Shown: positions 46,010 to 54,665, counted from the stretch's first letter. The stretch is DNA of 64,000 nucleotides from Euprymna scolopes (GCA_053919585.1 CM132806.1), one strand, 5' to 3'. Notes: a model not told the origin generated them from the letters alone. Program-made: numbers and translations.

Positions 46010-46026
46010 TTATTACTATTAGTGTA
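46010..46026 (+). repeat. Left copy of 17-bp target-site duplication TTATTACTATTAGTGTA
   Basis: Identical 17-mer at 54649-54665. Confidence 0.85.
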
Positions 46027-46184
46027 CCTATTTACTATGACTCCCCCACGGGACAGAGTTAGACACCAGGGCCGTTTTTTAACGTGGAGAAAAGGTACAA
46101 AAATAAAAATTGTCTCAGTCGTGAAGGATTTCTCCTCCACCGAAAGAGAACAAGAAAATGAAGTGCAGCATCTGAAGAACAGAT
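46027..46184 (-). mobile_element. Short retroelement, subtype C (diverged, outermost/founder body)
   Basis: Begins ATCTGTTCTTCAGATGCTGCAC. Diverged tail CGGCCCTGGTGTCTAACTCTGTCCCGTGGGGGAGTC abuts the left TSD. Confidence 0.7.
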
Positions 46185-46392
46185 GGTATTTATTTGCTCT
46201 CCCACCGAGCAAATTAGGCACACGGCCGATTTTTAATGTGAGGAGTGACGGGAGGGGGAAGAGAAAAAGGGGACCAGCTTCCGAGAGGTGGGAAATGGGA
46301 GCTGGTTAAAGGTCAGGCATGTGGGGTTGCCCCCACATCTGGTCTTTGCTAGTCATAGCTAGTCATGGCTTGCAGTATCTGCCGGAACAGAT
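46185..46392 (-). mobile_element. Short retroelement, subtype B copy 2
   Basis: Tandem near-identical copy of 46393-46590. Begins ATCTGTTC and ends AATAAATACC. Confidence 0.8.
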
Positions 46393-46607
46393 GGTATTTA
46401 TTTGCTCCCCCACCGAGCAAATTAGACACAAGGCCGATTTTTAATGTGAGGAGTGAAGGGAGGGGGAAGGGGAAAAGGGGACCAGCTCCCGAGAGGTGGG
46501 AAATGGGAGCTGGTTAAAGGTCAGACATGTGGGGTTGCCCCCACATCTGGTCTTTGCTAGTCATAGCTTGCAGTATCTGCCGGAACAGATACTACACTTT
46601 GATCTTG
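46393..46607 (-). mobile_element. U2-headed short retroelement, subtype B copy 1 (partial head)
   Basis: CAAGATCAAAGTGTAGTATCTGTTCCGGCAGATACTGCA, then a different body, then the same AATAAATACC tail. Confidence 0.8.
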
Positions 46608-47417
46608 TTTATATATTTTATTGAGAAAGAAAAAATTGAACATAAAAAACGTACAAAAAATTCAATTCAACAAAATTAGGCACAAGGCCCTACAAGAAAT
46701 TGGGAGGGGGAGGGTACAGGGTCTTTTTGACTACGTAACAGATGAGACTTTGAAGTCTTACTCTTGACTGGCAACATTTACCAAAATACCTCAATCACTC
46801 TGTGGATCCTAATCTAACTAATAACCCCAGCGTTCAATGTAAAATTTAACTATGTACAATTTGTATATTCATTTCTGTATGTTGTGTGTGCATTTTTTTT
46901 TTTTTTTTTTTTTTGTGTGTATGTGTACGAAAATAAAGTTCGATTTCATTAGAAAGAGTTCTTGAATTCATTGGCATAAAATGTTCGTGGAGTGGGAAAA
47001 AACTAATGAAAATGTTCATTTCAAAAAAAAAAGGAAAAAACTACTAATGTGTTGTTAGTAAGACCCCCCTGTACTATTCTATGTGGCTAGATCCCCCACT
47101 GTTTTCCGGGGAACCGAAAACAAGCAGAGCATCCCTAATGGGGTTTGGGGAAGTCGCCTTAATGGAGGTGGGAGAAAATAAAGCAACGGATGGAGGGGGT
47201 AGGAAGGTGACCTCTGAGTAGGGGGATGACCGGGGGCATCCGAAAATAAAGATGAGGAGCAGGGGGGTTGGGCAGACTCAGAGGTTCTCTAATACCAAAA
47301 AATAAAATCAGGAACAGGATCTCATTTGTACCACCAGTCAAGAGTTACTTTACTGAACTTATAATGCTAACCTAGGCGGGATGGGTTCCGTAGGACCCAG
47401 CACCGCCCATGCCATGC

Positions 47418-49890
47418 CTAAGGAGGGAACACGTATTGAAACTTGGCTCCTCGACGGATGCACAAACTAGTGCTGTGCACCCACCTCTTGTCAAATTCCA
47501 CTCTAGGCAACCTCTTCCAATCGCATCTGATCTTTACTTTAAGCAAATGTTTAAAGTAAACGATCAGATCCCGATCAGGAACAGATGTCCCTTCGTGGAC
47601 CAACTTGAGGCGCGTGATCCAAATGGTCATACGCGCTACTGCTAGGATCGCCAGGAAAACCAAACTTTCCTCCCTGGGGAACGGCGGCTCCATGTTGTAC
47701 ACAAAAGTTCCTACGTCGAGATCGAGCAGACACTCGGCATCGATGCAAGCTGTTACCCCCTCGACGTACCTTAATAGGGGCTGTATCCGGCTGCAACTAA
47801 AAAACGCGTGCTCGATTGTTTCGGGCTCGCGTTCGTCACAGCACAGACAGAAGCGGCTGGTATGTTCTTTATACCGGAAAAGTACGTCGAAGAGGGGCAG
47901 CGCATTTCGGACCAGTCGCCAAGTCAGGGAGAATTCCGAGTTATTCAGAATCTCCCGTCCCAGCGCCCAACGCCATTGAGAACGGACAACCTCCATCGAC
48001 CATCCCATCCGCCTACAAAGTGGATCCTTCGCGGTCCCCTCCACTAAATCCCGATACAGTTTCTTCCTTGGCTGATCGAGGACATTGGTCCCCGGCAAGG
48101 CTCTAAGAGCGGTTCGGCATTCGGAGAAGAACTTGGACTCCCCCTTCGGTCTACGACGACCTTCTACCGAAGGGTTGGGTTTGAGATTGGGAAACGAGTT
48201 CTCAACCACAGGGACCCAAGGAGCGTCTCCTTCAAGCGAACGACCCAGGAAAGCCAATCTCTCGGCGTTTCTATGACACAAGAGACTGGGCTGACCCAGG
48301 CCTCCCTCGCTCGGATTTTGAACACAGACCTCTCTGCAGACATAATGCTTACCCTCGTTCCACAAAAGTGAATCGAGGCGCCCTTGTAAGCGGGTTAGTC
48401 GTTCTGCAGGGAGAGGAAGTACAGACAAACGGTAAAGGATGAGCGGAAAGACGTATGTAGCACACGCCTCCGCCCGACCCTTCAAGGACAATTTCCTTCC
48501 AATCCAAGTCTTTACTGACGATTTGACCTTAGACCGTACTTCCGACCAATTCTTTTCCAGATGAAGTCCCGGTCCAAACCAGACACCGAGAATGCGGACC
48601 GGTCCATCGGTCCAGCTGAAAATACCTGGAAGCGAGTTTACCCCGGTCCAGGCCCCCAACCGCAGGCCAACAGACTTGCTACGGTTGAAGATGGCCCCTG
48701 TTACTTCTTCGTATCGAGCGAGCGCCTCGACCACCGCTTGAACGTCCGTGAGGCAAGACACGAACACGGTGACGTCATCGGCGAACGCGGAAACCCTGGC
48801 TCGTGTGCCTCCAGGGAGAGCTATTCCGCGCAGGACTGGTGTAGCCGCCTCGTCCCTTAACTTGCGAAGGAGGGGTTCCAACGCCAGGACATACAACAGA
48901 GGCGACAGCGGACAACCCTGTCGCACCGACCGAGAGACAGCGAATGACTCCGACAGCTTACCGTTGATCTGCACCGCTACCGTCGGCCTGTCATACAGAA
49001 CAAAGATCCACTTGCGGAAGTCCGGATTAAATCCGGCGGCCTCTAGCACAGATCCTAGGAACCGATGGTCGACCCTATCGAATGCCTTGGACTGATCCAA
49101 ACTGATCAGCGCGGCTTCGGCGTCGTCTTCTGTCCCCTCTATGATCGAGCGTATCAAGTGCAAATTGTCTTGAATCGATCTCCCCTTCACAGCATAAGTC
49201 TGGTCCGGTTCGATCAAGTCAGTGATGACAACCTGCAAGCGATTCGCAAGAATCTTTGCCAAAATCTTTAACTCTGTGTTTAGCAGAGTCAAGGGCCTAA
49301 AATCATCAAAGTTTTCCCTCCCACCATGCCGTTGACCTTTCCTCAGCAATGTGATCACACCTTTGGTCACCTGTCCAGGGATGGAACCCTGGGCAAACCA
49401 ATGGTTGAACATATCCTTCAGAATAGGGACCAACATGGGCGACAGCCTCAAGTAAAACTCGTAGGGTAGACCATCAAGCCCCGGGGATTTGTTATAGCCG
49501 ACCTGCTTCAACGCAGTAATAACCTCATGTTCAGTAATAAGACCATCACAGCTAGCCGCCCGAGCCGCCGTGAGGCGGGGCGAGTCAGCCAAATAGCTGC
49601 CAAACTCATCAACCCTGAGTCCGGGTAGTTGGGTGAAGCGCACCGATAGATGCTCCCGAAACCCCTCGCAGATCTCCCGAGTCGATACTAAGGGGTGTCC
49701 TTCCAGGTTATGTACTTTACGAATGTACCCATCCGAACCGCGCCTTAAAGCAGCCTTACGCTCAACAGCGTCAACATTCACAGCCTCGTTAGAAACTTTG
49801 TTTAACCTAGCCCTAACTACTTGACCTTCATACCGCTCGCTAGCCAAGCGGTTGAGATCTTGTTTAGCTAGTGCTAACTCTAGGGGGTCC
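47418..49890 (-). CDS. LINE ORF2 C-terminal part: reverse transcriptase + C-terminal CCHC finger
   Basis: Motifs KSPGLDG, FRPLTLLN, LDQSKAFDRV, RQGCPLSP, AFADD, CLCCDEREPETIEHAFFSC. Joins the APE frame if one base is removed from the G6/C5 run near 49882-49894. Confidence 0.9.
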
Positions 49891-53327: not shown

Positions 53328-54165
53328 GGTCGCCGCGCCGTCTCGCCGGGAGATGCATCAGCTCCCTCACATAGGGAGTCGTTCGCAGTTGAGATGCTGC
53401 GCATTTGGGGTGACGTACCCCTCCTGCCTGGCATTGTGGCGGTTGCACTGGCCGCTGGCGCGGACCAAAGTGTAGTGGGGGAAAAGAAAACCCAGGGGAA
53501 TGGAGGGGGAGGAGGGGGAGGAGCGGACTTTGAAGAAATTAGAGTTTTTGACTTCCCCTCACGGGGATGTCGGGTTAGCAGCTCAGATCCCCCCGCGAGG
53601 GGGGAGAGCAGAGAAGAAAGACGCAGTGGGTGCTAGCGGGTCAGAGTGCCGCGTCGCAATTAAGAGAGAGAGGGGATAGGCATCCCTGCCCACAGAGGGG
53701 AGCAGAAACGAAGCACCCGCCCTACCCCACGTCACCCTACCCACTAACTTACCCCAACGGAAGCGAGAAAGAGAACCCTGTCTGCTCGATCCACTGGGAG
53801 AGCAGCGAAGATAGACAAAGTTTGGGCCTGGCAGGTCAGAGTGCTGCTCAGGCAATTAAGTGTGGAGAAATTAGACCATCCCCTGTCTCTAGAGGGAAGA
53901 GACCGGAACGAAGAAAAAACGCATGCAAAAAAAACAACAAAAGCAGGTCTCAACTACCAGCTAGTGGTGCTGGTCCCGAGATTCCAGTCTCCCAAAAAAG
54001 GGGATCGGTTTCCGGGTCCAAGCTCCCACAAATGTGGAGTCGGTCCTTTAGGTCCTGACTCTCCAAAGGAGGGGGTCGGTCATTGCTAACCAAGGTTAGT
54101 ATGAAAACACCTTAACCTAGCCCGAAAGCCCGGTGGCGGAAAGTTTAGTAACTGAGAGAACAGAT

Positions 54166-54394
54166 GGTATTTATTTGCTCCCCCACTGAGCAAATTAGGC
54201 ACAAGGCCGTTTTTAATGTGAGGTAAAAACCAGCTCCCCTAAAAGTAGGCAAAAAGGGGGCACTCTGGTTACCAAAAATAATAATAGTCCCAGTATAGAG
54301 GGTTTCCCCTCCATTGACTGGTACAAATTATCTTAAGTGCAGCATCTGCCGGAACAGACACTACACTTTGATCTTGTCCCGAAGGCCAAGTAGT
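54166..54394 (-). mobile_element. U2-headed short retroelement, subtype A copy 2
   Basis: Near-identical to 54419-54648, with its own head ACTACTTGGCCTTCGGGACAAGATCAAAGTGTAGTGTCTGTTC. Followed by ATCTGTTC. Confidence 0.8.
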
Positions 54395-54418
54395 TGTGCA
54401 GTATCTGTCGGAACAGAT

Positions 54419-54648
54419 GGTATTTATTTGCTCCCCCACTGAGCAAATTAGGCACAAGGCCGTTTTTAATGTGAGGTAAAAACCAGCTCCCCTAAAAGTA
54501 GGCAAAAAGGGGGCACTCTGGTTACCAAAAATAATAATTGTCCCAGTATAGAGGGCCTCCCCTCCATTGACCGGCACAAACTATCCCAAGTGCAGCATCT
54601 GTCGGAACAGATACTACACTTTGATCTTGACCAAAAGGCCAAGAAAGT
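54419..54648 (-). mobile_element. U2-headed short retroelement (SINE-like), subtype A copy 1
   Basis: Minus strand begins ACTTTCTTGGCCTTTTGGTCAAGATCAAAGTGTAGTATCTGTTC, matching the U2 snRNA 5' ~45 nt. Ends GGCCTTGTGCCTAATTTGCTCAGTGGGGGAGCAAATAAATACC. Confidence 0.8.
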
Positions 54649-54665
54649 TTATTACTATTAGTGTA
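54649..54665 (+). repeat. Right copy of 17-bp target-site duplication
   Basis: Identical to 46010-46026 and abuts the first base of the U2-like head. Confidence 0.85.

Follow-up and report, generated by a model that had tools for sequence, protein, structure and literature searches.

SINEs with a U2 snRNA-derived head and U2-targeting LINEs nested within one another in the genome of Euprymna scolopes

The SINEU elements of crocodilians carry heads derived from the 5′ end of U2 (or U1) snRNA, and some of their partner Tx1-Mar LINEs carry the same heads; SINE and LINE share a target preference, copies are often in tandem, and transcription of the SINEs is unexplained because U2 has no known internal promoter (Kojima 2015, PMC4494074). 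In that system the shared target is a Mariner DNA transposon, and the families are old (85-91% identical to consensus). Keno, the U2 snRNA gene-specific lineage of the Tx1 clade, is described from vertebrates, lancelet and cnidarians, in real U2 genes (Kojima and Fujiwara 2004, as cited in PMC4494074 and PMC4640811), and the 3′ flanks of both Keno and Utopia (NeSL group) start at U2 nt 39 (PMC4640811). Utopia and YURE elements are sometimes inserted in tandem, and sometimes in U2-derived repeats such as the satellite U2_sat rather than in genes (PMC4640811). In Xenopus, Tx1L in Tx1D exemplifies LINEs whose target is carried around the genome by a different mobile element, an unrelated DNA transposon in that case, so that target number is not limited by a host gene family (PMC4494074). 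The R1 and R2 elements of rDNA are site-specific LINEs whose transcripts carry upstream target sequence that can guide a precise 5′ junction (PMC4494074), but they stay in the host's rRNA genes and no SINE carries their target.

We analysed a 64-kb stretch of DNA (hereafter, the window; GCA_053919585.1 CM132806.1) in which the initial annotation had described a nest of U2-headed SINEs and a LINE enclosed by a single target-site duplication (TSD), and this observation was confirmed. The 17-bp duplication TTATTACTATTAGTGTA (minus strand TACACTAATAGTAATAA) occurs exactly twice in the window, at 46010-46026 and 54649-54665, and encloses, on the minus strand, a U2-like head, five short elements and a 7.55-kb LINE. 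It begins TAC, like the TSDs of other insertions of the C family described below. All four AATAAATACC tails abut ATCTGTTC: the plus-strand form of AATAAATACC/ATCTGTTC, GAACAGATGGTATTTATT, occurs at 46177, 46385, 54158 and 54411, and the tail 10-mer occurs nowhere else in the window. No complete U2 gene lies in the window, where Rfam at gathering threshold finds only a borderline 5S match at 39356-39472.

In minus-strand order, the nest starts with the head H0 (54648-54613; ACTTTCTTGGCCTTTTGGTCAAGATCAAAGTGTAGT), derived from U2 nt 1-38, which matches this genome's own U2 at 91% over nt 4-36, shares its unusual GATCAAAGTG and continues through ATCTGTTC(T), corresponding to U2 nt 39-47. It is followed by the SINE unit B1 (54612-54419; 194 nt), whose genomic copies are 96-98% identical and which is probably the youngest insertion, by a 23-nt fragment (54418-54396), by a second complete head H2 (54395-54360; AACTACTTGGCCTTCGGGACAAGATCAAAGTGTAGT) and by the SINE unit B2 (54359-54166; begins GTCTGTTCC), with which H2 was brought in. 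The nine bases ATCTGTTCT (54165-54157) are the pad hit by B2 and the upstream remnant of the target duplication of the LINE (54156-46607). The downstream copy of that duplication (46606-46582) comprises head nt 21-36 (AAGATCAAAGTGTAGT) plus ATCTGTTC(C) and overlaps the start of the SINE unit A1 (46590-46393; 198 nt). The tail of A1 abuts the ATCTGTTC of the SINE unit A2 (46392-46185; 208 nt), and the tail of A2, AAATAAATACC, abuts the ATCTGTTC of the SINE C (46184-46027; ATCTGTTCTTCAG ... GTCATAGTAAATAGG), the founder and last unit of the array.

The LINE of the window, termed LINE-1 here, has the 5′ end ..CTCAGTTACTAAAC and the 3′ end ..AATAAAATATATAAAC and encodes Exo_endo_phos, RVT_1 and zf-RVT domains. 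ORF1 (50859-53327, minus strand; first ATG at codon 205) contains a CCHC knuckle, CWLCTQQGHMAKDC, but matched no Pfam family. The apurinic-type endonuclease part of ORF2 (49864-50853, minus strand; PF03372, E 9e-15) is separated by one frame break from the reverse transcriptase and zf-RVT part (47418-49847, minus strand; PF00078, E 3e-31, and PF13966). No restriction-like domain was found by Pfam, and the endonuclease lies upstream of RT, in contrast to Utopia. Xenopus Tx1 (P14381) is the top Swiss-Prot structural hit for both the endonuclease (E 4e-20, 25% identity; model pLDDT 78) and the RT (E 6e-27, 22% identity; a poor model, pLDDT 60), ahead of L1 ORF2. The Tx1 assignment is supported only by this nearest Swiss-Prot relative, and we refer to the element as Tx1-like.

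Genome-wide, the junction seen in the window is not due to chance. The 18-mer tail occurs 58,550 times, and 43,217 of these (74%) are followed by exactly ATCTGTTC, whereas reversed-pattern controls gave 0; these and the other counts are exact-match counts in one assembly. Among 39 retrieved full-length B copies, 34 have the exact junction, nearly all followed by another unit starting at nt 39. Most of the arrays sampled consist of one head, then mixed A/B units, then a terminal C unit. Of 92 units with array mates, only 5 have their nearest relative in the same array, and mean best identity is 84% within arrays against 97.9% between arrays, so arrays grew by insertion rather than duplication. 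Paralogous empty and filled sites were also found: of four sampled loci, L097 has head plus C empty, L026 and L028 have the same flanks (95-99.5% identical) with one 195-nt B unit exactly at the junction, and L012 has B-A-B at the same place.

The initial annotation had inferred that a founder SINE landed at a non-U2 site and that its head created a new target, which captured later SINEs and the LINE. This core inference holds genome-wide, with captures at GTAGT/ATCTGTTC, but four refinements are needed. First, the founder C belongs to a separate family, with its own tail (..GTAAATAGG) and its own weak target preference. Solo head-plus-C copies have 13-18 bp TSDs beginning TACA, arrays end in C followed by unique flank with 16-18 bp TSDs (three sampled arrays, L016, L018 and L022, and the window), and at least 21,240 head-plus-C junctions are still empty whereas 6,625 are filled. 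B RNA likewise carries a head, as a solo head-plus-B copy (L001) was found at a non-SINE site with an 18-bp TSD, CATCTGCTACTAGTCTCT.

Second, LINE-1 does not use the SINE junction. It joins 17 nt upstream, at head nt 20/21 (U2 21/22), with a 24-26 bp duplication that regenerates the pad. Its tail is followed by AAGATCAAAGTGTAGT in all 40 scored genomic copies, in which the 3′ 201 nt is 100% identical, and the same bases follow the tail in a further locus (L034) and, as a 26-bp TSD, in a real U2 gene (L082).

Third, the family that shares its tail end and junction with the A/B SINEs is a second LINE, LINE-2 (tail ..GACTAAATACC), found both in the U2 array and dispersed. In 15 of 20 dispersed copies, the terminal AAATACC is followed by ATCTGTTC plus a C, A or B body or a LINE 5′ end; two more are followed by ATCGC.., one by a U2 pseudogene starting at nt 1 (ATTGCTTCC..), one by ATCTTTCT.. 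and one by unrelated sequence. LINE-2 is the likely driver of the A/B units, although this partnership rests on a 7-nt shared end, a 14-17 nt box (GGCCTTGTGCCTAA) and a shared junction, with no long shared 3′ region. The only similarity between LINE and SINE found by blastn was the 3′-UTR box GGCCTTGTGCCTAATTT (46673-46689, minus strand), shared with the SINE 3′ module; a near-copy of this box, GGCCTTTGTGCCTAAG, lies in LINE-2.

Fourth, the suggestion in the initial annotation that such arrays would spare real U2 genes is only half right. The real U2 array (~1,185 units of 764 bp) holds no SINE tail (0 exact hits), and no SINE tail abuts real U2 sequence, but both LINE families sit in this array. 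Four insertions with fixed junctions lie in its first ~100 units: LINE-1b has U2 1-47, the element and U2 22-end, whereas LINE-2 has U2 1-47, the element and U2 1-end (nt 0/1). Relatives of LINE-1 in the array are 87% identical.

Taken as a whole, we interpret the nest as one instance of a genome-wide, three-layer retroelement system, to which we assign a probability of about 0.8. In the first layer, the dispersing SINE C, consisting of a head from U2 nt 1-38, then ATCTGTTCT, a body and its tail, is reverse-transcribed into sites that begin TACA, and every copy carries the U2 sequence GTGTAGT/ATCTGTTC. In the second, the Keno-like LINE-2 and its inferred non-autonomous A/B SINEs are inserted by target-primed reverse transcription from a bottom-strand nick at that junction, or less often at other /ATC sites (head nt 0/1, or G/ATCAAAG). 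Which protein cuts is inferred. The incoming RNA itself starts with the head, and we infer that its cDNA end anneals to the recipient's head, so that the 5′ junction is made by homology; each array would therefore keep a single head, with each unit starting at ATCTGTTC. In the third, the related LINE-1 nicks at its upstream position and leaves a usable pad on both sides. The most parsimonious order in the window is C, A2, A1, LINE-1, B2 (with its own head and 23 extra nt) and then B1. No age gradient along arrays was detectable, so it is not shown that new units always enter next to the head. The source of the head-bearing transcripts is unknown; the bodies contain T5 runs, copies lack the U2 promoter, and polyA RNA reads cover the SINEs on both strands, as expected for passengers in other transcripts.

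An alternative, which we consider unlikely but which retains some support, is that arrays mostly move as ready-made composites, a head-B-C or longer transcript being retrotransposed as one piece by the C-tail machinery or copied on a larger carrier element, in which case most junctions would record a few ancient insertions rather than tens of thousands of events. Head-B-C is a recurrent architecture (12 of 39 in the sample) and is flanked by C-type TSDs (L016, L018, L022), and L026 and L028 are near-identical copies on two chromosomes that include the fill; small arrays could partly spread in this way. However, array composition is highly variable, with A, B and at least three other body types in many orders, LINE-containing nests such as this 8.6-kb one are implausible as SINE-type transcripts, LINE-2 copies abut C, A, B and LINE 5′ ends alike, and units are 97-100% identical to units elsewhere irrespective of their neighbours. 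Local satellite-like amplification of one composite unit by tandem duplication or unequal crossing-over, with inherited ATCTGTTC junctions, is very doubtful: units do lie head to tail with regular ~195-210 bp spacing and up to about 17 units per array, but this reading is contradicted by the nearest-relative analysis of the 92 units, and neighbouring units are of different subfamilies in variable order, 7-kb LINEs of two families occupy the same junctions, and paralogous empty and filled sites exist. Finally, although a diverged full U2 follows a LINE-2 tail at one locus (L123), the view that the heads are scattered U2 retropseudogenes hit by ordinary U2-specific elements is contradicted by the constant fusion of the head to the same non-U2 bodies with defined tails and TSDs, by changes shared among heads relative to the real U2 (a 2-nt deletion, GGTC for GGCT, and loss of U2 sequence beyond about nt 47) and by the TSD of the solo head-plus-B insertion.

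Compared with the crocodilian system, the head here itself keeps the U2 cutting site and is the main target, units are 96-100% alike, and the copy number is at least 80,000; the head carries this genome's own U2 variant, which argues for an independent origin. LINE-2 has the 3′ junction reported for Keno, but most copies sit in SINE heads or other LINE copies, and LINE-2 also uses U2 nt 0/1, whereas LINE-1 uses nt 21/22. The carrier of the target is neither a DNA transposon, as for Tx1L, nor a satellite, as for U2_sat, but a dispersed SINE built from the LINE's ancestral host-gene target and itself moved by retrotransposition. No paper describing this combination was found, and a SINE head serving as the main target of a LINE appears undescribed.

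The TTCG-loop variant of the head seen in H2 also occurs in other copies. The orphan 23-nt unit start between B1 and H2, ATCTGTTCCGACAGATACTGCAC, is of unexplained origin, with extra 5′ sequence or a template jump as the likeliest reading. Together with the next 45 nt, H0 is predicted to fold as U2 stem-loop I plus a 15-bp hairpin (z = -5.7).

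The 17-mer TTATTACTATTAGTGTA occurs exactly twice in the window, at 46010 and 54649. Read on the minus strand, the two copies enclose a 36-nt head, H0 (54648-54613, ACTTTCTTGGCCTTTTGGTCAAGATCAAAGTGTAGT), unit B1 (54612-54419), an orphan 23-nt unit start (54396-54418), a second complete head, H2, unit B2 (54359-54166), ATCTGTTCT, a 7.55-kb LINE (54156-46607), AAGATCAAAGTGTAGT, and units A1 (46590-46393), A2 (46392-46185) and C (46184-46027). The 23-nt unit start is followed directly by H2 and may represent extra 5′ sequence from a template jump during the B2 insertion. All four AATAAATACC tails are followed by ATCTGTTC. 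The LINE contains an ORF1 with a CCHC knuckle, together with an APE-type endonuclease ORF and an RT/zf-RVT ORF that are separated by one frame break. A search with Rfam found no U2 gene in the window, whereas a 5S rRNA match on the minus strand at 39356-39472 lies just above the gathering score (39.3 against 38 bits) and could be a 5S gene, a pseudogene or a 5S-derived element. The initial annotation, which had described this nest of U2-headed SINEs and a LINE within one 17-bp duplication, is confirmed. Its model, in which a founder SINE landed at a non-U2 site and its head then captured later SINEs and the LINE, is supported with the refinements described here.

To locate the real U2 genes, we searched the genome with a conserved 36-nt U2 pattern, which identified about 1,185 intact copies, nearly all of them in a tandem array of 764-bp units near the end of contig 9 (G000:C9:168865780-168970000). 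The gene begins ATCGCTTCTCGGCCTTTTGGCTAAGATCAAAGTGTAGT/ATCTGTTCTTATCAGC (here and below, a slash within a sequence or between positions marks a junction). The SINE head is 91% identical to it and shares its GATCAAAGTG, and the tail junction therefore corresponds to U2 nt 38/39. This is the site reported for Utopia and, by identity of 3′ flanks, for Keno (PMC4640811). Genome-wide, the 18-mer tail GGGGAGCAAATAAATACC occurs 58,550 times in 5.9 Gb, and in 43,217 cases (74%) it is followed by exactly ATCTGTTC, whereas reversed-pattern controls gave 0. Of 39 full-length head+B copies retrieved from 25 contigs, 34 have the exact junction, and nearly all continue into another unit that starts at ATCTGTTC.

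The arrays have one head, followed by up to about 17 units of types A and B, plus at least three other body variants, in variable order. Most of the arrays sampled end in one C unit, followed by unique DNA. Whole arrays are flanked by 16-18 bp duplications beginning TAC, as seen in three sampled loci (L016, L018 and L022) and in the window. An unbiased sample of 30 head/C junctions revealed solo head+C copies with variable 5′ truncation and with 13-18 bp TSDs that begin TACA or AAC. Across the genome, 21,240 head/C-type junctions are empty and 6,625 are filled by an A/B tail. C is thus a dispersing SINE family with its own tail (..GTCATAGTAAATAGG) and its own weak target preference, and it is the founder in the window, whose nest is one of tens of thousands of such arrays.

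We next asked whether the arrays grew by insertion or by duplication. A total of 112 units were extracted and compared all against all. Of the 92 that have array mates, only 5 have their nearest relative in the same array, and mean best identity is 84% within arrays and 97.9% between arrays, which rejects local tandem amplification. The reading of the heads as U2 retropseudogenes was likewise rejected, on the evidence of the head/C junctions and the solo head+C copies. No significant trend of age against position in the arrays was found (Spearman 0.22, p 0.28, n 26). Paralogous copies of a larger carrier repeat, present on at least four chromosomes and carrying a 5′-truncated head (nt 11-36) plus C, allowed a comparison of empty and filled sites. 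In one of these loci (L097:1083-1910) head+C is empty. Two others, L026 and L028, have the same flanks, 95-99.5% identical, with one 195-nt B unit exactly between GTAGT and ATCTGTTC, and a fourth, L012, has B-A-B at the same place.

Notably, one locus (L001) is a solo head+B copy at a non-SINE site, with an 18-bp TSD, CATCTGCTACTAGTCTCT, which resembles the target. B RNA carries a head, and the single head per array is therefore best explained by homology, whereby the cDNA of the incoming head anneals to the head of the recipient and the 5′ junction is made there. This mechanism is inferred, by analogy with the co-transcribed target sequence of R1/R2-type elements (PMC4494074).

The first ~100 units of the U2 array hold four LINE insertions of 7.1-7.6 kb belonging to two families, so that about 4% of these units are interrupted. 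One of them (L082) is an 87% relative of the LINE in the window and has the structure U2 1-47, then CAGTGCG...AATAAAATAAATAAA, then U2 22-end, which is a 26-bp duplication. The tail of the window's LINE is followed by AAGATCAAAGTGTAGT in all 40 scored genomic copies, all of which are 100% identical over 201 nt. This LINE, termed LINE-1, is therefore inferred to nick 17 nt upstream of the SINE junction, and its duplication leaves the pad intact upstream, where B2 and then B1 probably landed. The other three insertions (L083-L085) represent a second family, LINE-2, which is 74% identical in the RT region and has the structure U2 1-47, then an element ending in a long hairpin plus GACTAAATACC, then complete U2. 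At least 1,653 candidate copies of LINE-2 were found genome-wide. In 15 of 20 dispersed copies its tail is followed by ATCTGTTC plus a C, A or B body or a LINE 5′ end, and the other five are followed by ATCGC.. (two copies), a U2 pseudogene starting at nt 1, ATCTTTCT.. and unrelated sequence.

A/B SINE tails likewise occur at head nt 0/1 and at G/ATCAAAG. At the latter junction, inside the head, A/B tails abut TCAAAGTGTAG in three loci (L098, L101 and L115), suggesting that the nick needs little more than /ATC plus context. LINE-2 and the A/B SINEs share the terminal AAATACC and the same choice of sites, LINE-2 and SINE B share a hairpin before the tail, and a GGCCTTGTGCCTAA box shared with the SINEs is exact in LINE-1 and present as a near-copy in LINE-2. 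These features make LINE-2 the best candidate driver of the A/B SINEs. This remains an inference, and no long shared tail exists. A blastn comparison of the SINE bodies with three LINE sequences found only the 17-nt box, giving no evidence that the bodies derive from these LINEs. Among reviewed proteins, the best structural and sequence match of both the RT and the APE models is Xenopus Tx1 (P14381), ahead of L1 ORF2. Because the RT model is poor (pLDDT 60), its fold matches are weak evidence, and assignment to the Tx1 clade as a Keno-like element, made without a tree including Repbase sequences, is likely but not proven. Protein searches returned only unnamed relatives, without taxon or clade names. 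Contigs from other assemblies that encode 47-61% identical ORF2 relatives show no U2 sequence at their ends, and U2 targeting therefore cannot be extended to them.

The initial annotation had further proposed that such decoy arrays would spare real U2 genes. We found 0 exact hits for the SINE tail followed by ATCTGTTCTTATCAGC, and no A/B tail in the ~40 kb of U2 array examined, whereas about a quarter of head/C pads are filled. Real U2 genes thus carry LINEs but not SINEs, insofar as these searches show. This difference may be explained by selection, array homogenisation or a target requirement. SINE-borne pads outnumber U2 genes by more than 20 to 1, so most insertions going into SINEs is also what mass action predicts.

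The first 81 nt of the SINE RNA are predicted to fold into U2 stem-loop I plus a 15-bp hairpin with G-U pairs, which pairs AAGUGUAGUAUCUG with CAGAUGCUGCACUU (54568-54648 on the minus strand in the window, and at all head+unit junctions). The energy is -35.8 kcal/mol with z = -5.7. The hairpin buries the cutting site and the branch-point-binding sequence, and at the DNA level it forms an inverted repeat around the nick site. PolyA RNA reads cover the SINEs on both strands and the LINE only thinly, with a sense bias in one run, and no transcript start could be called. About half of the head-containing polyA RNA reads in one run (X24) are accounted for by one solo 5′-truncated head+C copy between microsatellites on the minus strand of contig 35 (L136, G000:C35:14589700-14591300). 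This copy is not a source gene and is probably a passenger in a highly expressed transcript.

The closest systems are Keno, Utopia and the crocodilian SINEU/Tx1-Mar pair. In crocodilians, the shared target is a Mariner transposon. In the open-access literature searched, and without recourse to Repbase or Dfam, we found no paper describing U2-headed SINEs outside crocodilians, or a SINE whose head is the main target of its LINE. Site-specific LINEs that target low-copy genes such as U2 were judged to have a poor survival strategy (PMC4640811), and this genome shows one way out. The target is copied onto a SINE that spreads it to at least 28,000 places, where the LINEs and their SINEs accumulate, giving at least 58,550 A/B units, while no SINE insertion was detected by these searches in the about 1,185 real U2 genes. 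The system offers a natural, countable case for addressing how target specificity, 5′-junction formation by homology and LINE-SINE partnership work in the Tx1 clade, how snRNA-headed SINEs are transcribed, and whether decoy targets relieve a host gene family. It also bears on annotation. These elements lack tRNA, 7SL or 5S heads. A cuttlefish genome paper reported almost no SINEs in decapodiform cephalopods (PMC13218726), and if this genome belongs to that group, a large SINE population is being missed.

A more far-reaching interpretation, which we regard as tentative, is that the SINE head is an evolved, self-propagating safe harbour. By copying the U2 cutting site onto a dispersing SINE, a Keno-type LINE lineage would have escaped the copy-number ceiling of its host-gene target and would now live mainly inside its own non-autonomous relatives, while the essential U2 array stays free of SINEs. 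The 15-bp hairpin, or inverted repeat, around the cutting site would be part of this adaptation, as it could hide the branch-point-binding sequence in the RNA or offer a mirror-image site for second-strand cleavage in the DNA.

Interestingly, identical LINE-1 3′ ends recur at 7.3-9 kb spacing on contigs 10, 13 and 3 (G000:C10:52278-76842, C13:108561208-108569207 and C3:53285155-53292971), which suggests head-to-tail LINE arrays. A 60% identical ORF2 relative in another public assembly (ERZ21867824) also lies in ORF1-ORF2 tandem arrays of ~6.8 kb.
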